Source of the DNA: Scyliorhinus canicula
Lineage: Eukaryota
Assembly (NCBI RefSeq): GCF_902713615.1
Contig: NC_052154.1
Location: forward strand, 25,179,394 to 25,243,393
Direction: 5' to 3'
Length of the DNA stretch: 64,000 nucleotides
In this document: in pieces, positions 2,277 through 41,902 of the stretch
Numbering within the stretch: the first letter of the stretch is position 1
Layout of the letters: each line of letters opens with the position of its first letter
Translations under genes and position numbers: made by a program
Notes under the pieces: generated by a model
Seen by the model: only the letters and a program-made list of their open reading frames with translations
The model's database searches: none
What the model was told of the DNA's origin: nothing

Positions 2277-5200
2277 CTGAAAAAAAGTATTCCAAATGTA
2301 AGTCTTGACTTATTGCACATTTTGGGATCTTTTTAAAATATCCATTTTTGTGTTTTCACAAAGTGTTTTCTGCTGCCCATCGATACCACACCTAATCATA
2401 ACTAAAATGGAAAATTCTGAAAATACTCCACAGGTCTTGCAGCATCTGAGGTGAGAGAATCAGAGTTAACGAGTGGAATTTAATGGTGGCCGCAATGGGT
2501 CCAGTCACTAGCTGCAGTGCTCATTCCTGGGAGCCCCTTTGGGAATAAGGCCCAATTACGCAGCCTGCTGTTGGGATTCCTGGGTCCTGCAGGGGAAGTT
2601 TTCCAATGGACTTCCTGAGGCAGAGCTGGACCAGTTGAAGCTGGACAGAAAATAAATGCACATCTACTTCACCTGGACTACTCAGTAAAAATTATCATTA
2701 AAATAAAATGGACAAGGCTTTCCATCACTAGCCATGACTCACAGCAGAGGGACTACCTCCCGTGGAAGTCTCATTTCTGGAAAGACAGAACGCCATACAA
2801 TGTCAACCAACCTACCCTTGGAAGAAATCCTCCTTTAGATGTTTGAGTCTGGACTCGCACAAAACCATAATTTGTATTTTTACTTTGATTTGGCCCTATA
2901 TCCCATTCTTTCCCTTCGCCCTCTTTCACTGTGGTGGACTTTGCAAAACCTCTTTTCTCTGTTTTGTGTGTGTGTGAAATAAACCAATCCTTTTTGTTTT
3001 ATCTCATCTCGGGTTTTCTGTGGGAGGTATTTACAGAGGATTGGAGCACCCCAAATTTAAGGTTTATAAAGGAGGAAATAAAAACACATTTCTGTTTATG
3101 AACGGGTAGTGAGAGGTAAAATCGGGGCTTGCTAAATTAATCCCCCTCCTGTTAGCAACAGGATCAAATGTCCCTCTTCCAAGATCTAGTGGCCAATAGG
3201 GGCCAGGGCGGTGGCCACTACCAGGGGCCTAGACCATCGCTGGAGGGCCCCAGACCAAGGCGAGTAGGCAGGCTCACTGGGGACAGTAAGGGAGGCCCCA
3301 GGGGTTACAAGGGGAGGGCTGTCATTGTCAACGAGCTGGTTTTTCAAGAGTATCTCCATTTCCGCCACTGAGCCCGTCCATTGGGCACAGGCTACTCGAG
3401 GAGGATGCCCCCCTCCCTCACTATGCCACAGACATACTCACCAAGGTTGACCCACATGGCATGACCCTTGCCTGCCACTAGTTGAATACCAGTGGTGGTG
3501 GAATGAGACCCTTAAATGAATCTTCAGTAGCCTTTCCGTATGATCTGTTGATCTAAAATCCTCACACTGAAATCATTAACAGTACTTCTGTATCTCTATA
3601 GCCTGTAATCTTTGTCCTTCACAAATACAAAACCAGCTTAATTACTAATGTACCAATTGACCTAACACGATGATATAAAATCACTTTTTAACCGTTAATC
3701 TATCTCAATGTTTTGTACTTTGATTACAAAAATGGATGAATTCAATCAGACATTTTTATTGACTGCTTTATAATGGAAGTTTAAATTTGCATTGAACGTG
3801 AACTTAGTTGGGTGTGTGGGGACTGGGAAGGGGATGGGCTCATCACCCTGCACTGCCCCCCCACCCCATCAACCCAGTCTGCTTCCGCTGTGGCATTAAA
3901 TTTCACCCAATGTTTCTGATTGATGGCCCTTCATCAGAACTGGTGAAAAATGAGAAATGCAACAGATTTTAAACAAACACAAAGTCAGGTAAAGTGGATG
4001 AGGAATATTAAAGCCAAGCTGACTCCTAGCTGTAAGGAAATCTAGTGCCAAACTCTTGTTGCAGCCATATCATAATTGATTGATTGATTTGATTTTATTG
4101 TCACGCCTACTGAGGTACAGTCCAGGCAGATCGTTCCATACATGAAAAAATATAGGACAGACATAAATACACAATGTAAATGCATAGACACAGGCATCGG
4201 ATGAAGCCTATGGAGTGCAGTACTACTCAGTAGAGAAGATGTGTGAAGAGATCAGTTCAGTCCATAAGAGAGTCATTCAGGAGCTTGGTAACGGCGGGGA
4301 ACAAGCTGTTTTTGAACCTGTTAGTGCGTGTTCCCTGCCGGATGGAAGAGAGAATAACCCTCTCTTATGTTGTCCGCTTTCCCAAGGCAGCGGGAGGTAT
4401 AGGGGGGGGGGGGGGTCTTTGATTATGTTGCCCAATTTCCCAAGGCAGTTGGAGGTGTAGACATAGTCAATGGAAAGGAGGCGGTTTTGTGAGATGGACT
4501 GGGCTGTGTTCAGCAGCAAAAGTATGAAGTGAATTACTTTAAACCAGGACCACAGTTGCAATCTCAGTTCAAATAATAGTTACTATTTAATTCTTGTACA
4601 GCACCTACTGTTAATGGTTCTGTGTTGATACCTGCAGTTCGACTAGATCCATATTTTCTTTCTTTATTTGTCCCACTGCATCTCCTTCTGCCTTGTACCA
4701 TCAGCCCGTTAGTCATTGAATGGCTCCTGTCCTCCACTCTATCTTTCGTTTTATCTCCTCTCCCCTTTTACTTTGTGCTTCCTTGTTCCGGTTTCCTCTG
4801 CATTCCCCACCAGAAGAAATGGTCCTTCATACCTATCCGGCTGAAGCCCAAAATAATTTGAAATGCCTCGATTAGATCACCCCTCCAATAATCTAAACAG
4901 AGGCAGACAAGCCAAGTCGATGCAATTTGTCTTCATTATTTAACCCCTCAAGCCTGGTTCTGGTGAATCGATGGTGTAGCCCACTCTAAGGCCCCAATCT
5001 GTCTTCCGAAGTTTCATCCTCAAAATTGGACATCGTGGGCGTCATTCTCTGACCCCCCCTGCAGGGTCGGAGAATCGCCCGGCGCCAGCGTAAATCCCGC
5101 CCCCGCCGTGGCCAGAATTCTCCGCCACCAGGGAATCAGCGGGGGCGGGAATCGCGGCGCGCCGGTCAGAGGGCCCCCTGCTGCGATTTTCCGGCCCGCG

Positions 5201-8200
5201 ATGGGCCGAAGTCCCGCCGCTGACAGGCCGTTCCCGCCGGCGGGAATCAGAGCACCTCTGGTGCCGGCGGAAGCAGGCGCCGCGAGTGGGCACTGGGGGA
5301 GGGGGGGGGGGGGGGTGCGGGGGGATCTGACCCCGGGGGGTCCCCCCACGATGGCCTGGCCCGCGATCGGGGTTCACCGATCGGCGGGTGGGTCTGTGCC
5401 GTGGGGGCACTCTTTTTCTTACGCTGCCACCACGGCATCCACCATGGCGGAGGCGGAAGAGACCCCCTCCACCGTGCATGCGCCAGGGTGACGTCAGCGG
5501 CTGCTGACGCTCCGGCGCATGTGCGGACTCACGCCGGCAGGCGAAGGCCTTCCGGCCAGCTGTGGCACCGGTCATGGGGCGCCAACCACTTCGGCGCGGG
5601 CCTCGCCCCTAAAGGTGCGGAATTGGGGAGGCCCAATGCCGGAGTGGTTCTCGCCACTCCGGTACGCCGGGACCCCCCGGCCCGCCGGGTAGGGGAGAAT
5701 CCCGGCCTGTGTTCCAGATAGGGTTTGACCAAGTGTCAGTAAAATTGCAACATAATTTCCTCACTTTGAAATTCGAACACACCTCTTTCCACGATGCTTG
5801 CGCCCTCTTCAGAAAATTCAGCTTGACCAGTCAGGTACGGCCTACCTTTCACAAATCCACGCTGACTCCCTTGGATATTTGTCCAAGTCATTAATCACTG
5901 CTGATAGATTCCAGTAATTTCCCACAACTGATGGTAAACTGACAGCTCCCTCATTACCCTCGGCCGCTTCTTAAATAACTGAGTGACAGGCCAACGACAC
6001 TAACCCACGACAGCTATTGCAGGGCCTACACAAGATCACAGGCTAGAAAGCCAGGCGGAATATCTGGGGCTGGAGCATCCTGACCCGATGATCTGATCAA
6101 GTTCTGTTCCCGGTTTGAGCAATCAGCCAATGTATCAGTGCCACTCACCCCAACAGCCCTGGACACACCGATACCCACATTACATCCTCAGAGGTAAGAG
6201 CTGTATTCTTGAAAGTGAATCCGCGGAAAGCGACGGGCCCCGACGGCGTCAACTCTTAGCCTCAGGATCAGGGAATCCCGCCCTGGGATTGTCGTGCCTT
6301 TGACATGCATATCAACATATGAAGTAGGCCATTCAGCCCCTCAGGAGTGCTCTACCATTTGATAACATCACGGCTAATCTGATTTTCACCTCAACTCCAC
6401 TTTTTTGTCTACCCACTATTCCCTTTGACTCCTTGTCAATCAAGAATCTATCAAACCTGGCTCACATATTTCCCTTCGAAAGTTGCAGTCAGGGTCCCAC
6501 AACAGCTAAAGAAGCCAACTTGTATAGTCAAACAGGTTCTGTCTATTTCAGACAGAAATGCTTTTAAAGGTTTGCCCAGAGGTTAGTTTGGGACGATCAA
6601 AGTCTTCAATATATTTTCCACTGCTGGTAGTCAGGTTTTCAAGAGACAGATGGATGATGCAGGAATAAAACAGTTCAAAATTTTCAAATCTCATTGAAAA
6701 AAAAGTAGGAATATCGGTACCAGTAGTACTGGAGTTCCATTTTCAGATACACAAAACTAATTGGGACAGTCGGTACACTTCATTTCCCAATTCTACTCCT
6801 TGGCTAATCGTTGAAATAATCGTTGAAGCCCAAATTACCTCCAGCGTCGTTCAGCCACATTTTGAATATCTCATCTGCTTCTGTCTTTACATTCCACACT
6901 GCCCAACAGATAATTTGGTTTCAAATCCATTTATTCATGTGTCTGTTCGCTGGCCCTATCTCCCCATACGGTTTAATTTCAAACTCTATTCTGGAAGTAA
7001 TCGCAGTATATTTCATCCACTCCCCTATCCACTTTTCTTACAGACTGTAGAGTTTCATTTTTTCCCCCTTTAAACCTCACTGGAACAAGTGCAAAGTTAT
7101 TCACTTCGTTATTCACTTAAATGGACAGGGGTTGGGAAGTGCAGGTGTCCAAAGGGACATGGCTGTCTTTGTTCTTGAGTCACTCAAAGTTTGCATGCAG
7201 CTGCAGCAAGAGATTAGGAAGGCAAATAACCTGTTAACATTTTTCGCAAGGGAATTTAAGTACAGAAGTCTTGCAGCCTCTTCCCCACTGTTCCCAGACT
7301 CCTAAACCACCCTCCTATGGACTGATCTAGTTAATACTACACTCCTGTATGTTTCACCTGATGCCTGTGTCTATTTATTTACATTGTGTACCTTGTGTTG
7401 CCCTTTTCCATATTTTCTTTTCATGTACTAAATGATCTGTTTGAGCTGCACGCAGAAAAATACTTTTCCCTGTACCTCAGTACACGTGACAATATACAAA
7501 TCCAATCCAATTGTATAGAACCTTGGTGAGACCTCACTTAGAGTATTGTGCATAGTTTTGGTCCCCTTATCTAGGGAGGGATATACTTGTCATTGAGAGA
7601 GGGCAACGGAGGTTCACCAGATTAATCCCTGGGATGGTGAGATTGATTTATGAGGAGAAATTGAGAAGACTGGGTTCATATTCCCTAGAGTGTCGAAGAA
7701 TGAGGAGTGCTTCATTGAGACTTACAAAATTCTTACAGGGCATGACAGGGGAGATGTTGATTAGATGTTTCCCCTGGCTAGTTAATCTAAAAACACAGGA
7801 CATAATCTTAGGATAAGGAGTAGACGATTTAAGACGGAGATGAGGAGGAATTTATTCAGCCAGAGGGTGGTGAATCATTGGAATTCTCCATCCCAGAGCA
7901 CTGTGAAAGCTCAATTGTTCAATGGGGCAAGGCTTCGGGAATCTGAGGTGCAAAGGGACTCAGGAGTCCTATTTCAGGATTCTCTTAAGGTTAACATGCA
8001 GGTTCCGTTGGCAGTTAGGAAGGCAAATGCAATGTTAGCATTCACTTCAAGACAGGGCAGCATGGTGGCGCAGCATTTAGCACTACTGCTGCGCAGTCCC
8101 AGGTTCAATCCCGGCTCTGGGTCACTGCCCATGTGGAGTTTGCACATTCTCCCCGTGTTTGTGTGGATTTCACCCCCACAACCCAAACATGTGCAGGATA

Positions 8201-11200: not shown

Positions 11201-14200
11201 TAAATCGTACCCCAAGTCCACATGGAGGTGACATTAGAATAGAATCCATACTGTGCAGAAGGTCATTCGGCCATCGGGTCTGCTCCAATCCTCCGAAAGA
11301 GCACCCTACCTAGGCCCGATCCCCTGCCCTATCCCCGTAAACTCACCTTACCTTTGGACACAAAGGGGCAATTTAGCATGGCCAATCCACCAAACCTACA
11401 GATCTTTGGACTGTGGGAGGAAACTGGAGCATCCTGAGGAAACCCACACAGACACGGGGATGTGGGTGATATGCATCACTGTATGTACACAAGGGGTTAA
11501 TGTAAATACACTACAACTAAGTAAACACTAGAGGAGCACCGGAGATGTCATGACATGCAGACATACAGCTAATGAACACATAGAACAGGTCACGACCAAT
11601 GGGCAGTCAAGACACCCAGAGGTGACACTACCACAAGAGGGCATTATAAAACCTATATATAAAAGGGCAGGGCAGACATTCTCTTTCTCTTTCCACAGGC
11701 GACACTTAGAGAGAAAGACAGGGGCAGATCAGAAGCATCACACCCACCACGTGGCTTAGAGCAGACTGGTTAATTAGTCTGAGTTACTATAGCAAGATTA
11801 GCAGGAGAGTCAAACTCATAGAGAACTGTGCTAATGGTTCAATGAATCACATTGAACTTACTTCAAAGTCTGGAGTATCTTTTGGTCAAAGCTGGATCGA
11901 GTTGCAGCCTGTGATATCCCAGAGTACATAACACATCAGGCGAGAACATGCAAACTCTAGACTTGCAGTCACCCAAGGTCGGGGGCAGCACGGTGACGCA
12001 GTGGTTAGCAACCTCATGGCGCCGAGGACCCGGGTTCATTCCCCCCCCCCTCCCCCGAGTGGAGTTTGCATACTCTCCCCATGTTTGCATGGGTCTCACC
12101 CCCACAACCCAAAAAAGATGTGCAGGTTAGGTGAATTGGCCACGCTAAATTGTTCTGTAATTTGAAAAAGAATTGGGTACTCTAAATTTTTTAAAAATGT
12201 GTTCACCCAATGTCAGAATCAAACCTGGGCCCCTGGCGCTGAGAGGCAACAGTGCTAACCACTATGCCACCGTGCCCACCTTGGATCCTGTGGAAACTGG
12301 TAAGTGAAGGCGTAACCTTTGCTGCAGTGTTTGCAGTTACAGGTGATCGTTCATCCCCGTAGGGAGAACGTAATAGTGGGGAAGACAGACAAATGTCAAC
12401 GAATATACTTACTGACTCAAAATTATCCCATTTGTAAAAATCAAAATTTGTTGCCATTTATGAAGAAATCACTAGTAACTCAATGCTAGTCACTTGCATT
12501 CTCCATTTTCTCTTTGCCAGTCTCATGTATATATTTAATATTCTACCTTTGTCGGAATTGGTTGCCACTGAACTTTAGATGCATAAATGTATCTGTACTT
12601 TCTGCCATTGTAATCATAATTTATCCGCGGTAGTTCTATACCTGGAAAACAAACAAATATATTGTGAAATCTATTTTCTTCACTTTGATTAATTTACGGT
12701 TGAGTATTTCAGCAAATATATATTTCACAATAATTTAATCTTTGAACATACAGATGAACTGCCAAGGGTCAATTTTGTGTTATTTCATTCATGTACCTTT
12801 GTGCTTGGGAAAGTCCTGTTCACCCATCACTCTAGTGCTGCTGACCTATCCTGGCCCCAATAAAGTAATGTTTCAATTAAAGGTCTCACCTTTGTTTTCA
12901 AATCTCTCCGCGGCCTTGTCCTTCCCTATCTCTGTTAACTTCTTCAACCCTGCAACCCAGTAAGATACCTGCACTCCTCTAAATCTGGCCTCTTGTGCAC
13001 CTTGATTTAAATCACTGGCAGTCATGCCTTCTGCTGCAAGGCCCTAAACACTGGAATTCCATTGCTAAAACTCCTCATCTTGTCTCTCTTTCCATCTTTA
13101 AAATGTCCTTAAGGTCTCTCTCTCTGACCAAACCTTTGCAATCTACTTTAATAGCACTCTTGGGAAGTGCCCTGTGATATTTTAGGATGTTAAAATGTTA
13201 GGGACAATGTACAACTTTAAGTTTCATTTATACTTGCGTATTATACTTGTGAGGGGCTGGTTTAGCACACTGGGCTAAATCGCTGTTTTTTAAAGCAGAC
13301 CAAGGCAGTCCAGCAGAACGGCTCAATTCTCATACCAGCCTCCCCGAACAGGCGCCGGAATATGGCGACTAGGGGCTTTTCACAGTAACTTCAATGAAGC
13401 CTACTCGTGACAATAAGCGATTTTCATTTCATTTTTCATTAATAAATGTTAAACATGGATCCAGTTTCATTTAGAGTATTTTGTGAGCTTGGTGCCAGGA
13501 AGTCTGGAGGCCCTGTTTGTATTTTTAATGAAATTGTACAAACCTTGATGTGAAGCGTTGGGTTAGAAAGAGATTAGTGATTTTTCAAAAAAGGAGAAAA
13601 TACTGTGCTGCCTAGTGACAGAGGTGCAGGAACACACAGGCACAGCGAAAGACAGAAGGGCGGTTCAGTTTGTGTGTGAACTCTAGTAAAGAAATCCTGC
13701 AAGACTGCTGGGAATCTGCGTTTAGGGAACTCATGTTTGTTCTGAAGTTAAAGTAATAGTGATGTCAAATTATGGCTTTGAGTGCCTCAGGGAGGGAGAC
13801 GTGTTGGGGGAAAACAGTGAATGCTCAGAAGTGTACCGGAAGCAAACCAGATTGCAACTGAGCCTGTCCAAGCAATTAACCTTGGTGTTGAAATAGTGGT
13901 AAATCTTCACTGAAGGTTTGCATCTGTGAGCATGTTGCTGGGATAAAAGGGACATTTTTCTGGGGCAGGATTCTCCGTTAGCCGATACCGAAACCGGGAA
14001 AAGCAATTGGGCGGAGAATCGGTTCTGACGCCAAAATCGCGACAGGTGCCGATTTGACACCAAATCGCAATGCTCCAGCACCTCGACAGCAGCGTCAAAG
14101 CGTTCCGGAACGCACGTACAGTAGACACCGTTTACATATCATTAGTGGGCCTGACCTGGTATTCTTCGAGGCCCCTGCAATTCTCCGCCTCGGATGAGCC

Positions 14201-17200
14201 GATTTCCGGACGGCGTGGTTCACTAGTGCTTTTAAAAATCATGAAACCGGTGTGGCAGCTGCTGAGGGAGAGAGGGCATACGGAAAGTATTCAACATCGC
14301 CATAGTGTGCTGACAGTTGTGCCGCTGGTTGGGCGGCTTCTGCCAGGGTCGGTGGGAGGAGTGGGGGGCGGTCAGGAGGTGAGCTGTGGGGTCGAGATAA
14401 ATGGACAGGGAATACCATTGCTGTAGCTGGCAGGGCAGCCATGCAGTTGCGCACTCCGCTAACAGCCCACTTTGAACTTAGTGCCACGGATTGTATACGT
14501 GTCCCAACCAGGGCACCTCCCTGTGTGCCCTATGGCCCCAGCCAACCCATCAACTGTATGGGCATGCTCCAGCGTAACCAGTGCCATCTTGTGGCTAGGA
14601 TGAGCGTGTGTGGGGATTGTAATGTGTGTGTGTGGCCGCAGCTTGTCAGCCTCCCGAGTGCCAATCATGGACCTGGCGAATCCTGCACCGTTTTTCATTG
14701 GAATCAATTGTGTTCCACACGGCCTGGTGCTAGCCTCTCAATGGTAGCGGAATCAGTCCGGGCGCACGCCAGTTTTTCTGTCATAAAAGTCCAGGGATTT
14801 TGCACTGGCGTCAACACTTAGTGTCAGAATGGAGAATCCCGCCCTGGAGTTGGCATTGATATCTTTCCAACATTTTTGACAAGTGTGATATAGTTCATTT
14901 TTCTTGTTTAATAAACGGTTTATGCTTGGTGTTAAAAGTATACTGGCAGACTCTTGTGAATGTGTTCAGCACCTGACCTCCACGGTTCCTAAAAAAAAAG
15001 CTCGGATTTGTCAAGCCGCATCTTACTTAGAGATTCAAATTTTCCAATATTAACATCAGCTGGGATTGTAACAAAATATATCATAGAATGCAAGTTATTG
15101 CTGTTACCTTCAAATAACACTTCAGGCTTGCAGTACACATGTTCATCGTTTTCCTTCAGTGCATATGCCTTTGTGTCTTGAAGTCTGACAATATTTGTAC
15201 CCAAATCTGTGTTCTACAAAGATAATAAACACTTAAAATTGAGTTTCCCTTGTATTTTCTCCCTTTCAGCCCAATTCCAAAGATAAATAGCTAATTCCAG
15301 AATTTTCTGTTTTATTTTATGTTTACAGCATTTGTAGTATTTTGCTTTTGTGTTGCTTTTGAATAATTTTCTCATCAAAGCCTTTGCTAAGTGTTGGAAC
15401 CACATGAATAACGTTGTTTGTGCACTCCCACCATGAAGCTTGACCATCCCAGTACAATTTATTTTTCAGTAAACTTAATGGACAAAATAAATTCGAAATG
15501 TACAAGCAGGAACTGACAAAACCTTTGTGGTGACATTGGTATCTTTATTGCAACAGTATTTCTTCAAACCCCATACACCATTCCATGTCCACCCAATTCC
15601 TTCCATTTGTCTCTTATCATCCCTATCCATCTAGATCTCCTCCGGAGGTACCTGGCATCACATATGTAAGGCTTCAGCCAATACTATTCATTCCACATGA
15701 TATCAAGAAATGGCTGAAGGTACTGGAGACTGCAAAGGCTATACGCCCTGATAACATTCCGGCAATAGTACTGAAGACTTGAGCTCTAGAACTTGCCACA
15801 CTCCTAGCCAAGCTGTTCCAGTGCAGCTACAACACTGGCATCGACCCAGCAATGTGGAAAATTGTCCAGCAGTCTCCTACACACAAGGAATCGGACAAAT
15901 CCAACCCAGCCAATTACCACCCTATCAGTCTACTCTCCATCATCTGCAAAGTGATGGAAGGACTCATCAACAGTGCTACCAAGTCGCATTTACTCAGCAA
16001 TACCCTGCTCAAAGGCGCTCAGTTTGGGTTCCGCCAGGGTCACTCAGCTCCTGACCTCATTACAGCCTTACTTCAAACATGGACAGAAAAGCTGAATGCC
16101 AGAGGTGAGGTGTGAATTACTGCCCTTGGCATCAAAGCAGCATTTGACCGAGTATGGCATCAAGGAGCCCTAGCTAAACTGGAGTCTATGGGAATCAGGG
16201 GGCAAACACTCTGCTGATTGGAGTCATACCAAAGGAAGATGGCTGTGGTGGTTGGAGGTCAATCATCTCAGCTCCAGGACATCACTGCAGGAGTTCTTCG
16301 GGATAGTGACCTAGGCCCAACCATCTTCAGCTGCTTCATCGATGACTTCCCTACCATCATAAACTCAGATATGATGATGTTTGCGGGTGACTTCACAATG
16401 TTCAGCACCATTCGCGACTCCTCAGATAATGAAGCAGTCCATGTCCAAATGCAGCAACCTGGACAATATCTAGGCTTGGGCTGACAAGCAGCTACTTACA
16501 TTTGTGCCACACAAGTGCCAGGCATGACCATCTCCTACAAAAAAGAGGATCTAACCATTGCCCCTTGGCATTCAATGCAATTACCATCGTTGAAACACTG
16601 ACAATCAACATTCTGGGGGTTACCATTGATCAGAAACTGAGCTGGACTAACCATATTAATACTGTGGCTACCAGGGAAGGTCATAGGCTAGGAATCCTAC
16701 GGCACGTAACTCACCTCCTGACTCCCCCAAAGCCTGTCCACCATCTACAAGGCACATGTCAGGGACGGAATGGAATACTCTCCCGTTGCCTGGATGAGTG
16801 CAGTTCCGACAACACACAAGAAGCTTGATAACATCTAGGACAAAGCAGCCCGCTTGATTGGTCCTTCCACAAACAGTCAATCCCTCCACTGTCGATGAAC
16901 AGTGGCAGCCATGTGTACCATCTACAAGAGTAACTCACCAAGAGCACTGCAGTAACTCACCAAGGTTCCTTCCACAGCACCTCCCAAACTCATGATCACT
17001 ACCATCTAGAAGGACAAGAGCAGCAGATACCTGAAACCCCCCACCTGGAGGCTCCCCTCCAAGTCACTCACCACGCTGAATTGGAAATATATCACTGTTC
17101 CTTCACTGTCACTGGGACAAAATCCTGGAACTCCCTCCCTAACAGCAGGGTGGATGTACCTACACCTGAAGGACTGCAGAGGTTCAAGAAGACAACTCAC

Positions 17201-23200: not shown

Positions 23201-26200
23201 ATAATGGACACCATCAGGTTTGGGGCCTCGATATGGTCCCAACACCCGAGAATCTTCTAAGTTGAGAAGCTTCCGCCCATGATTCAAAATCAGACTACAT
23301 ATTTCAAAATGGAATAGGCAATAACCCAAGAAATTCTAGTATTTAAAATCTGCTATGTTAAATAGAAGCAAGTTAGTTCATCGTTATGTTTATCAAAAGT
23401 AGGGCAGCACGGTGGCCTACTGGTTAGCACAGCTGCCTCAAGGCGCTGAGGTCCCAGGTTCGATCCCGGCTCTGGGTCACTGTCCTTGTGGAGTTTGCAC
23501 ATTCTCCCCGTGTCTGCGTGGGTTTCGCACCCACAACCCAAAAATGTGCCACACTAAATTGCCCCTTAATTGTAAAAAACAATTGGGTAATCTAAATTAA
23601 AAACAAAAAATGTTTATCAAAAGTGTTCTGGGTCCATAAAGCATCCATGCGTTTCATCTGGAGTATAGTGTAAAACTAAGATTACCTTGTCATTTGGACA
23701 CCACGTCAGACAGCTGGCCCAGTTCACTCCTTTGAAGTAGGCTGTAGCCATTTTCAGGACATCCAGTTTCAATGGCTGTTCGATGAAGATAATGTAGTTT
23801 TCTGTCATGCCAAAACTGTGGTAGTAACTGGGATTGAGGAGCGAGTGACAAGGAACGGAATATAATATTTCACAATTTTTAAAGCACGCGTTCTTTTTGT
23901 CATCTGTTTGTTTTAAAATAAAGGAAGAATAGTTATCATATTGCAGCAAATCATGAGTTTAAAAGCTAATATGGTACTTTATAACCTGCACAGTAATGGT
24001 GGAAAAGTCCCCAGAGATAAAGATGGTGTTGGTTACAGCTTACTCAGGGAGTCCAAGTTGCTCTGGCAACATGCACTATTTGCATGCATCTTGTAGAGCA
24101 GGACAATGGATCATAGTGATGGTAGAGGACAACTTCCTCATGGCTTTCACATGGCTGACTAGGGATCTCTCACCACCCAACACTGCCGTGCATTGGAAGG
24201 ATTTTCAGGTTGATAGTCAAATTGTTTGGAAGAGGAAGTCACTTCTTCACAATCTTAGATAGTGTCTGAAAATGGCAGTAGTAGTCAACGATTTGGTATC
24301 CCAATGTCAGACATTTTGGCAAAGGTAAATTCAGGACTGGCAGGACTGCCTGGCCCTACGGGACTGACAGCCAATGAGGCTCATTAAGGGCCTTGTTAAC
24401 AGTAATGGAGGCTGGCAGGACTTTTTCCACTTGGCCTCCAGTTTCTCCACATTCCGGGAGGGGCACTTGAACTTCCTGGAGGTAGGCAGCCAGTAGAAGG
24501 CCTGCCCTCCCTGCCTGGTTAAGGGTACAACCAAATTCACCAAAAGAGGGACTCCCAACCCACAGTGATGATGGCCTGCTTTTCTATATTTTAATTAAGA
24601 AGCTCTCTATTTACCATTTATTGCAGCTGAGCACTGCTCGGAAGCTGGAAGGCCTTTGATTATCCTTCCAGCTTCAAAAGCCAAGTCACAGCCCTTAATT
24701 TGACAGGGAACCTAGTTCCATGCTAATTAAGGGGGTGTCTCTGTGTTATGAAGAGAAATTGGATAGACTTGGATTGTTTTCCTTGGAGCAGAGGAGACTG
24801 AGGAGGGACATGATTGAGAGCTATAGAATTATGAGGGGCTTGATAGAGTAGACAGGAAGAAACATTTCCCTTTGGTGGAGGGATCAGTGACCAGGGGCCA
24901 TAGATTTAAAGTAAGGGGCAGGAGGAAAAACCTTTTCATCCAGAGGGGGATGGGAGTGTGGGACTCACTGTCTGAAACAGTGGTGGAGGCAGAGACCCTC
25001 ATAACATTTAAGAAGTATTTAGATGCACATTTGCGATGCAAAGACATACACAGCTATTGGCCAAGTGCCGAAAAATGGGATTAGAATGTTAGGTGGTTGA
25101 TTTTGACCGGGGCAGACGTGATGAGCCAGGGGCCTTTTCTGTCCTGTAGACCTCTATGACCAAGTGATTAGGGTCTAGAATATACTGCCTGAGATGGTGG
25201 TGGGGGCTGGTTCAATTGAAGTATTCAAAGAGTTGTTAGACTGCTAAAAAGGAAGAACATGAAGAGTTAGGGGGAGAAGCCGACACTAGATGAGTTGATC
25301 ATTCAGAGGGCCGGTGCAGACATAATGGGCCAAATGGCCTCCCTCTGTGGTGCAAGGATTCTGGGGTCAATTACCTGACTTGGTATTTGGTATCTTCACA
25401 AACAGGTACTTTGTTTTGCCTTTCTCGGCAATAGAGGTGCCCATATTGTAAGTGTTTCCATTTCCATCATAATGTGGGTGAGATGTTGCCAGATTCAAAG
25501 CAACATATTTTCTGTAGTCAACCTATATAAATATGCCAACGGTAAATTAAGCCGCTCTTCACCTCTGAAGATACAGTATCAAAACATTTATTGTTTTCAA
25601 ACATGCACTTTGCACTTCGTTATAGTGCACTTGAGACATTGGGCTAGTATTCTCCCACACAATTCTCCCCACCCCGAAAGCTCACCGATCGGCCTCTTCC
25701 CCCACCACCTCGCCCCCCCGGGGCTACTTCCTTCAGCGGCTGGCCCCAGAACCCCGGCGCCATGTTGGTGAGGGGACGGAGCACTCCGTGAGGTTATCGC
25801 GCATGCGCTAGTTGGCACCGGCCCAACTGCGCATGCGCGGGACCCAAGGCGTCGGGTGTTGAACGTGCCAAGCCGAGGCCCCGCCCCCGTAAATCGAGCA
25901 ACGCCCCTGCTAGCCCCACGGAGAGTGGAGAATAGGGGTCTGGGAACGGGCGCTGACGCCAGACTAAAACACTCCGGCGTCGGCACTTAGACTCCCGTTC
26001 GGAGAATCCGGCCCATTATTTTAGCATAAATTCAATTGGAGAATATTATGACGCAGATAAATTAAAGCAATTAATAAAGACTGCGCCCACAAATTGATGG
26101 CATATGATGTTAGGCACTGAGGTACTGTACCATGAAACCGGAGGAACGCAGAAATATGAAACTTGTGTGCGGTGTTGAAATTTTCAACCTTCCAGAAGCA

Positions 26201-29200
26201 TTCCATTTTTGATCTCCACTTCTGTGCTGTATTTTGAGGGTTGAGTATGTCTGAACCACATTGTAAAATCTATGGAGTGAAGTTCAGGCCTTTCCTCACA
26301 GGAAGCATGAGAACACTCCAAGGGATGGATCTGCCCAAGTGGAGCAGCATTGTTTGTTCACTGTCTACGGGCTGACTTAAGTGGTATTAATAGAATATGG
26401 GAGTGAATAGCCTAGACATTGTCCCCTCCATAAAACAGTGTGTAAAAAAGCTTTAATTCAGGAGGAAGGTGCAATCAGAAACATTGCTGATCAACTGATG
26501 CAATCAAAAGACGTACAAGGTATTTAACCATTGAATATATGATAGTTAAACATTGGTGACTGTTTCTGTATAAATACAACTGTTCACCGAGCTGTCAACT
26601 AGAATCCTGCAAACAGAGTTTTGTTTTAACCAATCTCACCTTCTCCAATGTTTCAAGTGATCTCGGATCTATCCTCCTGATATAGTTGACCTCTGATGAA
26701 GCAAAGAAATTCTCACCATATTTAATTATATTAATCAAACAATTGTCCGTGAAATCAGGAATGACATGCGTGAGATAGGAAAATGCCCTGTAAATTAAAA
26801 ACAGAGGCATGTTGCTTTGTGTTCAATTCAGTTGTTTTCCATTTTGAGTCAGTGTGCAATGGAACAATTTAGAGCAGACTGTATAAAGTAAGTGGGCGAA
26901 ATTCTCCGCACCCGCGGAAAGTCGGCAAACGGTCGTAAAAATCGGGACCGTTTTACGACGGTCGCGAAGGCTTCATTTCCCGACCGATTCACTTCCTGGA
27001 AATGGGCTAGCAGCGCGGCCGCGTCAATTACGTGCGTGATGACGACGGAACGCGACGACGACACGAACCCGCCCATGTGACGCCGCCCGACGCCGTAAAA
27101 AGGCGCGGGCGACCACAGAATCTGTCGGGCAGGATGTCGGAGCCTAGGCGAGCTGCACCTCGCTTTATTGATGCAGACGTCGAGGCGCTGCTCGATGCCG
27201 TGGAGCAGAGGAGGGGCATCATCCGCCCGCGGAGAGGGCATCGCCAACCTGCCAGCACGGTACGCCAGGCCTGGCGTGACGTGGCTGCTGCCGTCAGTGC
27301 TGTGGGGCAGACCCCTCGCTCAGCAGAGCAGTGCCGAAAGAAGCTACATGACCTCACCAGGTCTGCCAGGGTAAGTGCCATGAGGGTGCCCCCTAGTCAC
27401 AACCATCCCTCCCCCTTAACTGCCCGGGGGGGGGGGGGGGGGGGGAGAGGGATTGGGGCAGAGTTATTTGAGGGTGGTTCACAAAGTTGTCACAGACCCA
27501 GCGCTCTGGCCCCGAGGAGAGATGCAATCATCTGATGACAACTTGCCCCCCTCCCAAACTGTGCCAGTATCAGAACGGACTTCTGAGACCTACCGTTTTG
27601 TAATGATCTACCTATGTTTCCTCCCCCAACAGGCCAAGGCCGGTCATAACCACCGTGAGCGGCACAAGACTGGAGGGGGTTCGCCCAACATGCACCCCCT
27701 CAGCACCTTTGAACAGAGGGCACTGGACCTTGTTGGGGGGTCTGCCACCCGCGATATCGCGCAATGCGAGGTTGGCGGAACTGCAGCAAGTGAGACAACC
27801 CTCCCTGACAAACACCCTCCCCCCCCCCCCCATCCTCTGTCCCTTCACACACCCTGCCCACTGGGACACCTCCCCATCCTCTGTCCCTTCACACACCCTG
27901 CCCACTGGGACCGTCCAGCGGCCTGCCGAGCAAATCGAAATAACCCGTCTCATTCTCTTCCCTAGGACGTGATGCCGAACGACCAGGGCCGTCTGGCTGC
28001 AGACGGAGACACGAATCTGCCGCCACCTCACCCGGGGCCTCACAACAGAGGGTGCCCGATCAGCGGGCAGCCCTATCTGCCCCAACCCAATCTGCGGACC
28101 AGGACGCACAGAGGGTTCGAGGTCCACCACCACCACCAGAAATGGCCAGGGACAACCCTCCTGTCGCTGAGCGGCCCCACACCCTGGACGAGGACCTAAC
28201 CATTGAGAGCGTCGGGCTTGCGGCACTGCTTTCTCCCACCACTTCCATCATCCCAGAGATACACACCCCGGCGGGCCTATTTAGTGATGAGTCTCCTGGG
28301 GCACAGTCTGGTTGGCACATCACAGATGAGCAGGTACAGCAGGTGGAGGTCGGAGCAACAGAGGGCCCGGACTCGCGGAGGCCAGACCAGGCCCAGGATG
28401 CAGCTGGCTCCCAGACGTTTTCGGAGTTCCTGGAGTTTCTCAACCCACCCGCACAGCCGATGCCTCAGGAAACCCAGGGAAACAATGACGGGATGAGGGC
28501 TTCCTTCCAGACTCTGCAGACGCTGTTAGAGGAGTCGATCCGCGTCCAAGAGCAGGGAGTGGTGCCGCTCATGGCAGAGACCCAGTCCGACACCGCACGG
28601 GTGGCATCCGCGGTGGAGGCAATGGGTCAGGTTATGCAAGACGTTGGGATTAATGTGCACGCGTCATCCTCGGCCCTGGACAGGGTTGCCCTCTCACAGG
28701 CAGCAATGTGCCAGAGCCAAACCGACATTGCCGGCGCCCTGCGGGCCATGGCCGAGTCTCAGCAGGTCATTGGCCAGTCGCAGCAGTCAGTCGCCTAGAG
28801 CATCAACCGCCTGACACATGTGCTGGATGGCGTCGTGCACAATCAGGTTGAGATCGCACAGTCCCTGGCGGGAATGTCTAACTCCCTGGACTCCGTCTCT
28901 GCAAACCTTCGGATCCTGGTGGATACCGTTGCAGGCCTCCAGGACTGGCAGCGCCAGGTGTCGGTGGTGCGACGGGGAACCTCCCCGCTCGCACCTCTGT
29001 CCCAAAGTGAGGCCCGGGGGCCACCGGGCTCCCCGAGGGAGGAGGAGGTTTCGGGGCCCGTCCCATTAACTCCATCACGGGACGTCCCGGAATTCTCGGC
29101 CTCCCCCCGTCCCATCCCTGGTGCATCGGGTGGGCAGCAGGCAGAGCAGGGTGGCACAATGTCACCCGAGACGCCCGCAGAGCAGCCTGGCCCATCAAGG

Positions 29201-32200: not shown

Positions 32201-33459
32201 TAGCGGGAGGGCGTCGGAACAGCGTCGCCGTAAAAATTTCCGACGCCCGCTATTCTCCGACCCGTCGTGAGTCCGGAGAATCTCGCCCAGTGTTTCTGCA
32301 ATGTTGGTACAACCCGAGGCGGACCCTAATGGGGCACTGGTGGTTGAAAGAAGTCAAAGTGACAATGAAAGCTTTGAACATAATTTTAATCTACCCTAAA
32401 CACACAAACAGTGTGACTGGATAATTGTTTAAGAAGGAATGAAAGGGACTTCCGGTGGTGGCCATGAGCTGGGTGGTCACGTGAAAAGTCGCTCTCTCCT
32501 AGAAACATCCTATTAAGACCTTACTAACCCATCAAACAGGAACCAAAACAGGTTCCCCCAACTTAACCCCCACCTACCACTCAACCGACTGAGATGCTGG
32601 AGAGGCAGCAGCCAAGTCACAAGGCCAGCAAGAGCGAAGAGAGGACAACCTCAATCTCAGAGCAGGGGGACCCATCTGGCGACCTAGACCTGAGCATGAC
32701 GGACCCAACAGGATTGCCAATTCCTGCTCAATCGCCGACAGAGAAGCTGATGCTCCAAAAGCATAGAGAAGCGGTGAAAGTGGACCTCATGTCGGCAATG
32801 AAGTTGGCAATAGAAGCCACGCTGGCCCCCATAAATGGAGCAATGGATAGAGCAGAGACTGGAGGCCCAAGAGGTGGCGGTGCGGGACCTGGAGAAAGCA
32901 GCGATGGACCAAGACCAGCGGATCACCTCACTCGAAACTGAGGTGACCAGGTTGAGAATGACCCAGAAGGCGCTAAAGGGGAAGGTGGATGACCAAGAAA
33001 ACAGGTCCCGCCGGCAAAACCTGTGGATCGTCGGACTATCCGAGGGAGTAGAGTATAAGAACCCGACAGAACGTCTCAAAGATGCTCGATAAACTGGTTG
33101 GGGAGAAGAGCTACGTCAAGCCCCCAGAGGTGGACCGGACCCACAAGTCATTCCAAAATAAACCCAAGTCAGAGGAACCACCGCGAGCAAAAATTGCAAA
33201 ACTTCACGGGCGGGATTCTCCGACCCCCCCCGCCGGGTCAGAGAATACCCTGGGGGGGGGGGGGGGGGGGGGGTGTGTGTGTGTGTGTGTGTGTGGCGTG
33301 AATCCCGCCCCCGCTGGCTGACGAATTCTCCGGCGCCGGGGATTTGGCAGGAATCGCGCCGCGCCGTATGGCTGCCCGTTTTAGGCCAGTTCTGCCGGCA
33401 TAATTCAGAGTAGGTACTTACCGGTGGGACTTGGTTGTGTGGGCGGCCTACGGGGTCCT

Positions 33460-39400: not shown

Positions 39401-41902
39401 CATATAACAAGCACTTAATTCCAGGGATCATTCTTGTGAACCTCCTCTGGACCCTTTCCAAGGCCAGCACACCCTCCCTTAGATATGGGGCTCAAAGACT
39501 GCTCACAATACTCCAAATGGGGTCTGACCAGAGCCTTATACAGCCTCAGAAGTACATCCCTGCTCCTATATTCTTGCCCTCGCCACATGAATGATAACAT
39601 TGCATTTGCCTTGGCTCCACCCAGCAATGACGTCATCTCCCCACGCTTAAAAACATATTAACTCTGTAGGCTGAAAGCACAGTAACTCCCCAGGGACTTT
39701 ACCCAGTCAAAGCACGGGATTGAAAACCACATTCCTCTGGTCAATTTCACCTTCTGGTTCCTAAAGGCTCTCAGGCCCTGCAAAACAAAATACTTAAAAC
39801 AAACACGACTCCTTCTGCACTGTAGGGGTTCTTTGATTCCATGCTCCTATGTCTTGAGCTTTTGCACCAATGGCAGCCAACAGTGAGAGGTCTTTCTTTG
39901 CCTGCAAGCCACCCTTAAACATTTCACTTTTTAATTCTAAAGTTTTATATTTTCGTTTCACTTCTGACACAAATCAGATCCACCTTCTGTCATCTACCAC
40001 CACCAGTAAAAAAACATCAAAGACTATCCAAAGAAGTAGTTATTCATCTATTGCTGCTCTTGTAATGTTAGTTGAACCAGTCACTGCTCTCGCAACAACA
40101 GTACAGGCCTCGGATAAATGAAATTCTACTTTATCTGGGGACCACCAAATAAAACCTGAACTCAATCTTTTGAGTGGGTTCTTTACTCCACAGCTTATTA
40201 CAGTGCGCCGTTACACAGATGGAGAAAAGCTGGTTAGTGACAAAACATCCACGAGAAACAAAATAACACGCATCAGATTACACTGAGTTCATCTGATGTT
40301 CAACAACTTTCAAATCCAAATTTTAAAAAAATAAATTTAGAGTACCCAATTCATTTTTCCCAATTCGGGGGCAATTTAGTGTGGCCAATCTACCTAGCCT
40401 GCACACCTTTGGGTTGTGGGGGCAAAACCCACGCAAACACGGGGAGAATGTGCAAACACCACACAAACCGTGACCCAGAGCCGGGATTGGACCTGGGACC
40501 TCGGTGCCGTGTGGCCGCAATGCTAACCACATGCTGCCCTTTTTCAAATCCAAATTAGTGCAATCTCTCTCGTTCAGCCGTGCCGACATTCTTCCACCTG
40601 GGCCTTTGACAACCCTTCATTGAAAACTAATCGACATTTAGATTTTGCAAGCAGATTAAGCATACTTGTTATGTGCTCAATGAGGAATGCACACCTAAAG
40701 GACAGAGACAAAGAGAGAATGTCTGTAACTGCCTTGCTATTTAACATTTTCCCATATGGAAATAGGTAAATGGTGTTCTATAGCAACATACCATTTTCAA
40801 AAGTGAAACTATGGAGCAGCGACATCCCATCAAACCAGTGGTTGTAGATAGTGTCTCCAACTTTGTGCATGCCAGGTCCATTTCGAATGAGCGTCCCGTG
40901 CAGCCATTGTGGAATTTGACCTATTTTCATTTAAAATAATGAGTTAAATGTATCTGTATTTACAGCAATGGTGCCGATCACAATTCAATGCAATGTCAGT
41001 AATGCCTTGTGCATTTTCAACTCGTGAGCTGCAGCTGAATCTAAACACCTTTCCAAAGTCGCAACTTCAATTCAAATTTCACAAGAAGCTTCCTGATGTT
41101 CTAAAAGACCCAGTGTCACCAGACCAGAATGACGAGGCAGTCCAGGGACGACTCACTGATGCATGACTGCATGATCCCCCCAAAAAAATCTAACATCGTT
41201 AGATCAATGTGTGTGTCAGGAGATCATTTTACAGAAGTATAAATATTGCAGAATCCAAGACCCAAAAACAGCCCAACTTGCAGGCGGATGTGAACAAGCG
41301 GTAAAGTGAAGTCAACTCCTCCCAACTGCGTGTTGTTGATACAGTTTCGGTTCCACACAGCAGGAAGGAAAAACAATCCTCCTTCGAGGGGAGAGGAGGG
41401 TCTCAATCCGGTTAGCTTTTTTTTAAGGGGAGGGGGGTATCCTATGAGGTCTTGACTCCTCATTCACACTGGCCATGGCTCGTCCTGCGCCACCAAAATG
41501 CACAAAGTAAACATTTGACCAGTTTTGGTCCTGGCTGTGCACGGAGCTCTTACAGGGAGGTTGGGAAGGTCGCAGTTATTTTTCCCAACCAGACACAGAC
41601 AAACATTAATATTTCAGGATTTGATCAAACCCGGTTATCCTGTGGGGGAAGTTGCAGTGATTTAAACTGCGGTGGACCAAGTGGCCTAATTCTGCTCCTA
41701 TGTCTTATTAACCGATTAATTGCGATTGGTCATTTCCACTGCTTGATTTGTTACTCAAACCCCCAAATGATTTGCAGAAAGCGGTTGACATCTAACGGGA
41801 CGATTCTGGGTTACACTGTAATGAACAATAGGTCTCACCTTGAATGTCTGCTTTGATTGGTTCTGGATTTTCTCTTTTGTTGTCTGTGAAGAGCGATTGC
41901 AT
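2107..41902 (-). CDS. BCO1: Beta-carotene 15,15'-oxygenase (BCO1 or BCO1-like), 11 coding exons, 528 aa: join(41902-41839,40920-40792,37383-37254,26787-26640,25522-25375,23903-23686,18746-18480,15213-15108,12641-12547,9224-9113,2276-2107)
   Basis: Exons assembled by hand. All introns are GT-AG and phases are consistent (64+129+130+148+148+218+267+106+95+112+170=1587 nt). Translation begins [38 protein letters not shown]...NHWFDGM...[19 protein letters not shown]. The four carotenoid-oxygenase His ligands occur in TSHPH, YYHSFG, VYHHAN and LDLHG. BCO1 versus BCO1-like orthology is not resolved. Confidence 0.93.
2471..3908. mobile_element. Older Harbinger-type MITE (with secondary insertions)
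   Basis: GAGTGGAATTTAATG ... CATTAAATTTCACCC; TSD AAC/AAT; splits a Penelope-type repeat (CAGAGTTAAC|GTTTC). Confidence 0.65.
5037..5707. mobile_element. Harbinger-type MITE (671 bp)
   Basis: Ends GGGCGTCATTCTC ... GGAGAATCCCGGCC; TSD CGT/TGT; GC-rich; homologous to 33208-33877. Confidence 0.85.
6055..6283. mobile_element. Truncated MITE fragment
   Basis: Right end GGCGTCAACTCTTAG...GGGAATCCCGCCC matches the right ends at 14844 and 26014; left end unclear. Confidence 0.5.
7120..9030 (+). mobile_element. Nested CR1 LINE 3' fragments with an inserted SINE and a REX1-like LINE tail
   Basis: [19 protein letters not shown]-type CR1 C-termini occur twice (nested); SINE at 8055-8270 with a CATTCA(C/T)TTC duplication. 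Confidence 0.75.
8055..8270 (+). mobile_element. tRNA-derived SINE (V-SINE/HE1-like short form)
   Basis: A box TGGCGCAGCATT, B box GGTTCAATCCC, body TGTGGAGTTTGCACATTCTCCCCGTG; multiple copies in window. Confidence 0.85.
9113..9224 (-). CDS. BCO1: BCO1 exon 10 ([38 protein letters not shown])
   Basis: CAG acceptor, GTAACG donor; 112 nt; EPVFV...EDDG motif. Confidence 0.95.
10429..11212. mobile_element. Harbinger-type MITE, second subfamily (784 bp)
   Basis: GGGCACGATCTAA ... TTAAATCGTACCC; TSD CAA. Confidence 0.8.
11236..12277 (-). mobile_element. SINE (-) interrupted by a solo LTR and by a second SINE (+, ~11982-12197)
   Basis: SINE pieces 11236-11460, 11944-11980, 12203-12277; TCACCCAA(G/T)GTC duplicated around the inner SINE. 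Confidence 0.8.
11461..11938 (+). mobile_element. Solo LTR (478 bp) nested in a SINE
   Basis: TG...CA ends; 5-bp TSD GGGGA/GGCGA; CCAAT (~11596) and TATATAAAA (~11656); host SINE sequence resumes at 11944. Confidence 0.75.
12547..12641 (-). CDS. BCO1: BCO1 exon 9 ([31 protein letters not shown])
   Basis: CAG acceptor, GTAGAA donor; 95 nt; ELPRINY motif. Confidence 0.95.
13253..13440 (+). mobile_element. tRNA-derived SINE (different head)
   Basis: GGGGCTGGTTTAGCAC head; tail ACAGTAACTTCA..GAAGCCTACT.GTGACAATAA shared with the SINEs at 48385, 50670 and 62350. Confidence 0.7.
13963..14844. mobile_element. Harbinger-type MITE (~880 bp)
   Basis: GGGCAGGATTCTCC ... GGAGAATCCCGCCC; TSD ambiguous by one base (CTG/TG). 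Confidence 0.85.
15108..15213 (-). CDS. BCO1: BCO1 exon 8 ([21 protein letters not shown]...[10 protein letters not shown])
   Basis: TAG acceptor, GTAACA donor; 106 nt. Confidence 0.93.
15640..17275 (+). mobile_element. 5'-truncated CR1-group LINE (L2/Crack-like), RT to 3' tail, frameshifted
   Basis: [50 protein letters not shown](=FADD), ILGVTID. Confidence 0.85.
18480..18746 (-). CDS. BCO1: BCO1 exon 7 ([12 protein letters not shown]...[17 protein letters not shown]...KRFAIP)
   Basis: CAG acceptor, GTAAAA donor; 267 nt open frame. Confidence 0.95.
19586..19810 (+). mobile_element. tRNA-derived SINE
   Basis: Same family as 8055-8270; TAAAGAACAAGGT duplication flanks it. Confidence 0.85.
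20152..20492 (+). mobile_element. tRNA-derived SINE (full HE1-like form with CR1-type tail)
   Basis: A/B boxes, GGGTTTCCTCCGGGTGCTC central domain, GATGGGCCGAATGGCCT tail. Confidence 0.85.
20900..22620 (+). mobile_element. Old CR1 LINE remnant (ORF1 end plus endonuclease/RT fragments)
   Basis: [14 protein letters not shown]...REGVN* resembles the CR1 ORF1 esterase end; ESIWLELRN; LIEFFDEV. Confidence 0.6.
22728..23278. mobile_element. Older MITE with GGGCGGAA termini
   Basis: GGGCGGAACCTT ... AAGCTTCCGCCC; TSD not preserved. Confidence 0.55.
23402..23600 (+). mobile_element. tRNA-derived SINE
   Basis: Same family as 8055; ATGTTTATCAAAAGT duplication flanks it. Confidence 0.85.
23686..23903 (-). 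CDS. BCO1: BCO1 exon 6 (...[24 protein letters not shown]...)
   Basis: CAG acceptor, GTAATC donor; 218 nt; matches ORF 23617..23949. Confidence 0.95.
24745..25360 (+). mobile_element. CR1 LINE 3' ends
   Basis: [28 protein letters not shown]; ATGGGCCAAATGGCCT tail. Confidence 0.75.
25375..25522 (-). CDS. BCO1: BCO1 exon 5 ([19 protein letters not shown]...NMGTS)
   Basis: TAG acceptor, GTAATT donor; 148 nt; first Fe-ligand His. Confidence 0.95.
25641..26014. mobile_element. Harbinger-type MITE (374 bp)
   Basis: GGGCTAGTATTCTCC ... GGAGAATCCGGCCC; TSD ATT. Confidence 0.85.
26640..26787 (-). CDS. BCO1: BCO1 exon 4 ([21 protein letters not shown]...ETLEK)
   Basis: CAG acceptor, GTGAGA donor; 148 nt; matches ORF 26595..26810. 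Confidence 0.95.
27134..29350 (+). pseudogene. Harbinger Myb/SANT-like (trihelix) DNA-binding partner gene, 3 exons join(27134-27370,27633-27789,27966-29350), ~592 codons, with in-frame premature TAG at 28796-28798
   Basis: Exon 1 [27 protein letters not shown]...[29 protein letters not shown] is a Myb/SANT-like domain. Splice sites AGG|GTAAGT, CAG|GCC, CAA|GTGAGA, TAG|GAC keep frame into ORF 28052..28798. ORF 28820..29350 continues in the same frame after the TAG. Confidence 0.85.
29896..31245 (-). CDS. Harbinger (HARBI1-like, DDE_Tnp_4) transposase, 449 aa, intact
   Basis: Uninterrupted ORF with the HTH-like region ([12 protein letters not shown]...[11 protein letters not shown]) and catalytic motifs [53 protein letters not shown]. 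Two poly-Glu tracts. Confidence 0.95.
   Translation of the reverse strand: MHGNRTAMFCAVVGAALLDLEMQQHPHPQPAVAAGPAAAAEGRAEELPVVEQHGGGEEEEEEEEEEEEERVRVQPRRQRRRPKPRVCRVRVSFLTMPDITCRRRLRLSRQTVIHICELLSHLAPCGTGGGHAIPVAIKVTVALNFYATGSFQSPSGDVSGISQSSVHRCIRDVTDALYAIADRYITFPEDRASQDSRARGFASVAGIPRVQGSIDCVHVPMRPPAVDRDVFTNRRGTYSINVQVVCDPHMRFMNVCARFPGSVHDSYILAQSFIPAMFEGRPPRLRGWLLGDRGYPLRSWLMTPIRRPQTNAETRYNEAHAATRGVVERCLGLLKMRFRCLDRSGGALQYQADRVARIVVVCCALHNIAMQRGDDLLQEAEGEASGSGASTEEEEEEEEEEEEEDAGGVAGAARRHDPGAGDVQEAARRTRQGRRARDAMVAARFTHRM
31578..31890. repeat. 21-bp minisatellite (CCGTCTCCCCCACTGCCCCCT) x ~14-15 inside the Harbinger element
   Basis: Direct tandem array; source of the spurious PPPSPPL / SVSPTAP / GAVGETE ORFs. 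Confidence 0.95.
32445..35980 (+). mobile_element. Degenerate, internally deleted L1/Tx1-clade LINE
   Basis: 5' GGGACTTCCGGTGG start. ORF1 remnants ([25 protein letters not shown]), endonuclease remnants (GRDFNC, ISDHAP), C-terminal [15 protein letters not shown] plus A-tail; AAGGAATG duplicated at both ends. Confidence 0.8.
33208..33877. mobile_element. Harbinger-type MITE (670 bp) inserted in L1-like ORF1
   Basis: Perfect TIR GGGCGGGATTCT/AGAATCCCGCCC; TSD CAC; removing it rejoins ORF1 (AKLH|KFH). Confidence 0.9.
36400..37192 (+). mobile_element. Old CR1 LINE 3' fragment
   Basis: LVRPQFECC-like RT C-terminus and GGGCTGAATGGCCTCCTTCTG tail. Confidence 0.6.
37254..37383 (-). CDS. BCO1: BCO1 exon 3 ([14 protein letters not shown]...[19 protein letters not shown])
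   Basis: TAG acceptor, GTAAGT donor; 130 nt; PDPCK motif. Confidence 0.95.
37766..37970 (-). mobile_element. tRNA-derived SINE
   Basis: Reverse complement of the 8055 family; GACATCCCTTTCT duplication. Confidence 0.85.
38978..39610 (-). mobile_element. CR1 LINE 3' fragment
   Basis: KANAMLSF...[15 protein letters not shown] (ORF 39415..39636); same family as 7921-8890. Confidence 0.8.
40323..40540 (-). mobile_element. tRNA-derived SINE
   Basis: Reverse complement of the 8055 family; TTTTCAAATCCAAATT duplication. Confidence 0.85.
40792..40920 (-). CDS. BCO1: BCO1 exon 2 ([43 protein letters not shown])
   Basis: AG at 40922-40921, GT at 40791; 129 nt; RNGPG and HWFDG motifs. Confidence 0.95.
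41839..41902 (-). CDS. BCO1: BCO1 coding exon 1 ([22 protein letters not shown])
   Basis: ATG at 41902, donor GTGAGA at 41838; 64 nt. Confidence 0.9.

Follow-up and report, generated by a model that had tools for sequence, protein, structure and literature searches.

The 64-kb stretch of DNA from the catshark Scyliorhinus canicula analyzed here (the window, to which all positions refer) contains a 5,395-bp PIF/Harbinger element at 26894-32288. We consider, with a probability of roughly 0.8, that this is a copy of the PIF/Harbinger superfamily that integrated into a BCO1-like gene, in intron 3, and has undergone very little decay since. The initial annotation had claimed a complete two-gene Harbinger transposon at this place, with 15-bp terminal inverted repeats (TIRs), an AGT target-site duplication (TSD), an intact DDE transposase of 449 amino acids (aa) on the minus strand, a spliced Myb/SANT-like gene on the plus strand arranged tail to tail with it, and a location in BCO1 intron 3. 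The layout, the domains, the ends and the low coding decay agree with this picture, the host gene being BCO1-like and a member of the RPE65 family. The features discussed below are collected in Table 1.

The two TIR arms are alike at 14 of 15 positions, and at 25 of 33 (76%) once the match from the repeat finder is extended to 33 nt. When up to two mismatches are allowed, the window has seven occurrences of the TIR 15-mer, where dinucleotide-preserving shuffles lead one to expect 0.10; for a consensus form with three mismatches, the observed and expected numbers are 14 and 0.91. Given this excess over the shuffles, the TIR is not a chance match. Both copies of the AGT duplication (26891-26893 and 32289-32291) are perfect. 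Moving the boundary one base outward (T26893/A32289) was rejected, since no matching duplication is then left. There is no paralogous empty site within the window, and tblastn detected no further transposase or Myb fragments in it. The left subterminal region (26909-27133) has the short motifs CGTAAAA and CCGACGCC in repeated form, and the right one (31989-32273) has a block in common with MITE D, one of the miniature transposable elements with inverted repeats (MITEs) described below. The subterminal repeats ATTCTCCG and CGCTATTC of the right end could be sites at which the Myb-like protein binds. A 12-bp repeat (31946-31995) follows the 21-bp minisatellite of this end. An Rfam scan of the element gave only sub-threshold matches at chance level, the best of them (E = 0.046) lying far below the gathering score.

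The transposase gene is a single open reading frame (ORF). Its product matches the Pfam model DDE_Tnp_4 (PF13359) over the whole profile (1-158 of 158) with E = 5.6e-39, and the related Plant_tran and DDE_Tnp_1 models more weakly. In an alignment of 11 sequences, D215, D292 and E328 occupy the catalytic columns, all invariant columns are retained and the N-terminal helix-turn-helix-like region is conserved. Among 5.8 billion proteins, a word-indexed search picked out 56 relatives from sharks, rays, sturgeons, the coelacanth, amphibians and others, nearly all of them annotated as "putative nuclease HARBI1". The top identity (75% over 55% of the query) belongs to a partial S. canicula protein, and the best full-length match is P0001 of Scyliorhinus torazame (XP_072360437.1, 484 aa). 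The transposase is colinear with P0001 from the initial Met to the C-terminus, with identities of 71% overall and 80% in the core (residues 80-375), and the two proteins agree in the first methionine, in the residues of the C-terminus and in where two acidic runs are positioned. In the present copy these positions hold two poly-Glu runs of about 13 residues each, encoded by the triplet arrays 30032-30072 and 31039-31078. Both exceed the acidic runs at the same two places in P0001, from which we conclude that the poly-Glu runs are in-frame microsatellite expansions.

The Myb-like partner gene converges with the transposase gene tail to tail, with 545 bp between the two stops. Both of its introns are of the GT-AG type, and the spliced gene comprises 592 codons; for alignment it was read through the premature stop described below, with X at the stop codon. 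Exon 1 matches the Pfam model Myb_DNA-bind_5 (PF13873) at residues 9-79 (E = 2.9e-11; 43.6 bits against a cutoff of 21.7 bits), and exon 3 matches no Pfam family. The 592-residue product is colinear from the first to the last residue with P0057 (XP_038632691.1, 623 aa), at 50.6% identity. No gap falls at either splice junction and exon 2 aligns gap-free, the KTGGG and EQRALDL motifs included; such colinearity across the junctions supports the gene model. P0057 is the product of S. canicula LOC119953007, annotated as an 'uncharacterized protein', and has a Myb domain, an acidic linker, a heptad tail and a basic C-terminus in the same order as the partner. It differs in having no premature stop and, being about half identical, belongs to another family. 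With the first 276 residues of exon 3 as query, an exhaustive HMMER search gave ten relatives, and XP_038632691.1 was the best of them. In a search for near-identical proteins, this 276-aa query had no match within the permitted length range, a weak blank given that the length rule bars full-length relatives of about 590 aa. An ATTAAA occurs at 29414, 64 nt past the Myb stop. Two repeats were noted in the introns, namely a G20 run in intron 1 (27426-27445) and, in intron 2 (27828-27911), a 44-bp sequence in perfect tandem duplication (1.9 copies, 100% matching). In the hagfish Myxine glutinosa protein P0058 (1520 aa), residues 80-128 of the exon-3 query are matched in ten separate stretches, which indicates that this segment is tandemly repeated in the hagfish protein.

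The only lesion in either reading frame is the in-frame TAG at codon 409 of the Myb gene, where the homologues have Glu (P0057) or Gln (P0059). It removes 183 residues, including a conserved block, a basic cluster containing PRKR and a terminal RARKA cluster. As predicted from the sequence, the partner would lack a conserved tail with basic clusters resembling nuclear localization signals. The 183 codons beyond the TAG carry no further lesion and, compared with P0057, are conserved as well as the preceding part, for which reason the stop looks recent. With the stop at codon 409 of 592 and the conserved tail lost, the present copy is most likely not self-sufficient, and it could be moved by, or donate transposase to, other members of the family. 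The claim of the initial annotation that the copy lies one base from autonomy stands for the reading frames, in which the TAG is the sole lesion, and does not extend beyond them. An improbable alternative is that the copy is autonomous, either because the TAG is polymorphic or results from an error in assembly or sequencing, or because the truncated partner of 408 residues suffices. Both the Myb domain and some of the heptad region are still present in this partner, its length fits the 300-400 aa typical of Myb partners (PMC9710019), and the clean frame past the TAG is in keeping with such a view. However, the conservation of the lost tail argues that it is needed, and there is no sign of a low-quality base call in the window, which is free of N's.

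How would such an element move? The mechanism proposed here is drawn from rice Ping/Pong and zebrafish Harbinger3_DR. In rice and in the reconstructed zebrafish element, two proteins are involved, and the Myb partner attaches to a motif in the subterminal region and is required for nuclear import of the transposase (PMC9710019). By analogy, the Myb/SANT-like protein of the shark element would bind short subterminal motifs, for which ATTCTCCG, CGTAAAA and CGCTATTC are candidates, and would also bind the transposase and carry it into the nucleus. The DDE transposase, with D215/D292/E328, would cut at the GGGCG...ATTCTCCG terminal repeats, and reinsertion with a 3-bp staggered cut would leave a duplication such as the AGT present on both sides here.

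The coding integrity of this one copy indirectly supports a young age for the element. About 3% of random substitutions in the 3,120 coding nt create a stop and, when indels are assumed to arise at 5-15% of the substitution rate, one disabling lesion corresponds to a neutral divergence of 0.2-0.5%, with a 95% upper bound of 1-2%; when indels are left out, the estimate becomes 1% with an upper bound of 5%. Substitution rates in elasmobranchs are low, and a low divergence could still mean a long time in years. The initial annotation had also taken the largely undecayed CpGs, against CpG-poor flanks, as a sign of youth. The contrast itself is real, the CpG observed/expected ratio being 0.695 for the element and 0.31-0.42 for its flanks, with values of 1.69 over 26894-27133 and 1.25 over 31989-32288. 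However, the ratio is 0.74-0.88 in the MITEs (0.79 in MITE B) and 0.72 in the 2-kb stretch with MITE D (4001-6000), and MITEs that are about 30% apart (B and D) keep CpG equally high. CpG retention thus does not discriminate age, and it was rejected as a clock.

Besides the loss of this clock, several points weigh against the reading of a PIF/Harbinger copy with very little decay. Among the 5.8 billion proteins, S. canicula RefSeq included, none is near-identical to the transposase, and no record exists of the exact protein. The transposase gene showed no canonical poly(A) signal, the AGT duplication differs from the classical TWA target, and the proteins of the element could still have been inactivated by missense changes. 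The TAG may already have existed in the source copy, and the present copy would then have moved in trans. Finally, the evidence comes from one copy of the family. As to the first of these points, annotation never captured the intact transposase ORF of the present copy, so that absence from databases says little about copy number.

In a second explanation, the family is extinct and the copy, although it looks intact, is catalytically dead owing to missense changes, expanded poly-Glu runs or silencing, and is a well-preserved fossil. The missing near-identical transposase and partner among the 5.8 billion proteins, the partner gene that is already broken and the triplet arrays exceeding those of P0001 speak for this explanation. 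Nevertheless, apart from the TAG, both frames stay open over 3.1 kb, the DDE triad and the invariant columns are kept, and the database absence loses much of its force since annotation pipelines missed the intact ORF. A further argument comes from the sister species S. torazame, whose lineage (about 80% core identity) has six distinct intact transposases (P0001 and P0070-P0074) of 481-484 aa, 98-99.8% identical to one another. These six have the appearance of a Harbinger family, recently amplified, that has been filed as a host gene, and the near-identity of six intact transposases shows that Harbinger amplification has occurred recently in catsharks. They are the closest full-length relatives of the present transposase, have the same start and end and acidic runs in the same places, and are encoded in a single exon inside the range of another gene. 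In contrast to the S. canicula element, they belong to another lineage in another species, and they are annotated as a host nuclease rather than as a transposon. Taken together, we consider an extinct family unlikely, albeit an explanation that deserves serious attention.

Open reading frames could also be the result of selection by the host. In this explanation the insertion is old and its genes have been kept open in an early domestication of the HARBI1/NAIF1 kind, for which there is precedent in the repeated co-domestication of Harbinger gene pairs (PMC9710019). The present element has intact TIRs and a perfect TSD, its CpG-rich termini are undecayed, it lies within the intron of another gene and its partner gene has a premature stop, none of which is in line with domestication of the HARBI1/NAIF1 type. 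Domestication is therefore very improbable here.

Table 1. Positions of the features of the Harbinger element, the related MITEs and the host gene in the window
Feature	Position	Strand	Remarks
Left TIR	26894-26908	+	GGGCGAAATTCTCCG
Right TIR	32274-32288	-	GGGCGAGATTCTCCG (reverse complement of 32274-32288)
TSD, left copy	26891-26893		AGT; read directly; same as 32289-32291
TSD, right copy	32289-32291		AGT; read directly; perfect duplicate
Left subterminal region	26909-27133	+	Presumed Myb-gene promoter/5′ untranslated region; very CpG-rich
Myb partner exon 1	27134-27370	+	79 codons; ATG at 27134; GTAAGT donor at 27371
Myb partner exon 2	27633-27789	+	52 codons + 1 nt; AG acceptor 27631-27632; GTGAGA donor 27790
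Myb partner exon 3	27966-29350	+	Acidic linker, heptad-repeat tail, basic C-terminus; TAA at 29348-29350
In-frame TAG	28796-28798	+	Codon 409/592; only lesion in either reading frame
Box C/D-like block	29637-29712	-	76 nt; ~183 nt downstream of transposase stop
Transposase ORF	29896-31245	-	449 codons; no internal stop; helix-turn-helix-like N-terminal region and DDE_Tnp_4 core
21-bp minisatellite	31572-31892		15.2 copies, 94% matching; upstream of transposase ATG, between ATG and right end
Right subterminal region	31989-32273	-	Two further copies of TIR core ATTCTCCG (one inverted); three copies of CGCTATTC
MITE A	13963-14844		882 bp; same TIR; duplication ambiguous (CTG or TGG)
MITE B	33208-33877		670 bp; TIR GGGCGGGATTCTCCG / GGGCGGGATTCTGCG; perfect CAC duplication
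MITE C	25641-26014		374 bp; related TIR; perfect ATT duplication; next host-gene intron
MITE D	5037-5707		671 bp; flanked by CGT / TGT
Host exon 4 (RPE65/BCO1-like)	26598-26787	-	Pfam RPE65, E = 8.7e-6, profile 100-143
Candidate first coding exon, BCO1-like gene	41902 to ~41838	-	Followed by GTGAGA donor

The window also contains four short, non-coding MITE-like elements with the TIR GGGCGGGATTCTCCG, a density of about one per 16 kb. MITEs B and D form one MITE family and are about 70% identical to each other. What the MITEs have in common with the element is only the TIR and scattered subterminal blocks, and they are not direct deletion derivatives of it. The TIR core is repeated in inverted orientation about 30-50 nt inside the end in several MITEs, as it is in the right end of the element. 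The four MITEs with the same terminal repeat demonstrate a prolific history of the wider lineage in the S. canicula genome. In addition, a solo TIR-like 15-mer (GGGCGGGATTCCCTG) lies at 6269-6283 on the minus strand with no obvious partner, possibly as one end of a MITE that was truncated.

The target choice of these insertions is different from the classical one. The duplications are AGT for the element and ATT, CAC and CGT/TGT for the MITEs, and TWA is not among them in this sample of five insertions. There is no apparent extended target motif shared around the five. The element has the composition of a PIF/Harbinger member, namely a DDE_Tnp_4 transposase with the full triad, a Myb partner gene, TIRs, a 3-bp TSD and Tourist-like MITEs sharing its TIR, and lacks the TWA duplication of the classical PIF/Harbinger group (Han et al. 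2015; PMC4482050). Three further PHIS groups were defined by Han et al. on the basis of their TSDs: Pangu (ANT), NuwaI (CWG) and NuwaII (C|TNA|G) (PMC4482050). With NuwaI, the shark element shares a TIR starting with GGG and a Myb partner, but its AGT does not fit CWG. The AGT and ATT duplications do fit the ANT of Pangu, whose second ORF has no known motif, whereas the second gene here has a clear Myb domain, and the CAC of MITE B falls outside ANT. No TSD-defined group of Han et al. fits all the duplications found with this TIR (AGT, ATT, CAC, CGT).

The shark element resembles zebrafish Harbinger3_DR and other fish Harbingers in combining a DDE_Tnp_4 transposase with a Myb/SANT-like partner, short TIRs and a 3-bp TSD, and in having repeated subterminal motifs (potential binding sites of the partner) and related MITEs. 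It differs from these families in its TSD, which is not TWA, in its host, a cartilaginous fish, and in its partner, which has 592 codons instead of about 300-400 and a heptad tail without a Pfam match. Moreover, the shark copy is natural and nearly intact, whereas the zebrafish element, the vertebrate Harbinger on which functional work has been done, was reconstructed. Rice Ping/Pong with mPing (Tourist MITEs) offers a similar arrangement, in which a two-gene element of the autonomous type stands beside many short non-coding carriers of the TIR, although that system belongs to plants and its target is TWA.

A 76-nt block resembling a box C/D RNA lies downstream of the transposase stop. It has AUGAUGA at 29702-29696 and CUGA at 29648-29645, flanked by the complementary arms GCCAUG and CAUGGC. 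In a scan of both strands for C box, D box and stem, this block was the sole match in the window, with 0.14 expected. It matches no Rfam family, and its minimum-free-energy fold is unremarkable (z = -1.29). One may go further and picture a Harbinger family that is still moving in catsharks, as a natural vertebrate two-component system with a relaxed, non-TWA target choice, a Myb partner of unusual length with a coiled coil and, in the 3′ region of the transposase gene, a box C/D-like RNA module, driving very abundant MITEs. We regard this wider picture as doubtful and offer it only tentatively.

The host gene is recognized by a series of RPE65-family exons on the minus strand of the window, at about 41902, at 40930-40781 and 37408-37253, and then from 26787 downward. 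By this series the element is placed in intron 3 of the BCO1-like gene. Exon 4 scores 25.5 bits against the RPE65 model, slightly below the gathering cutoff of 27 bits, and another host exon matches solved RPE65 and beta-carotene oxygenase chains. The exons closely resemble the human BCO1 sequence. With the candidate first coding exon at 41902, the start of the host gene falls within the window. About 104 nt separate the left end of the element from the exon-4 acceptor downstream of it, and the transposase gene has the same orientation as the host gene. The same intron also holds a further repeat, an ORF on the plus strand (35216-35587) whose motif makes it look like the C-terminal part of the reverse-transcriptase ORF of a long interspersed nuclear element.

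Previous surveys offer a different view of sharks. The superfamily was reported to be absent from sharks by Han et al. 2015 (PMC4482050), and Etchegaray et al. 2022 found none in the elephant shark and called for an examination of other cartilaginous fishes (PMC9179366). Where these surveys name a species, it is the elephant shark from which they judge. In a 2025 paper on the grey reef shark genome, Tourist and Harbinger types are the commonest DNA transposons by RepeatMasker (PMC12498223), so the presence of Harbinger elements in sharks is known at the level of a repeat table; we found no paper with a detailed description of a shark Harbinger element, in agreement with the view of the initial annotation that the family is probably uncharacterised. 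The element described here is of an ordinary type and not a new kind. The 5.4-kb insertion lies close to a splice acceptor of the carotenoid oxygenase gene, at a distance of about 100 nt, and is a convenient presence/absence marker. The non-TWA duplications bear on the evolution of target choice in the PIF/Harbinger superfamily. If natural open copies exist in the family, they would provide a ready-made two-protein system for the recruitment of a transposase by a Myb protein. With a complete, barely decayed element and four related MITEs in 64 kb of catshark DNA, the picture of absence drawn by the surveys needs correcting.

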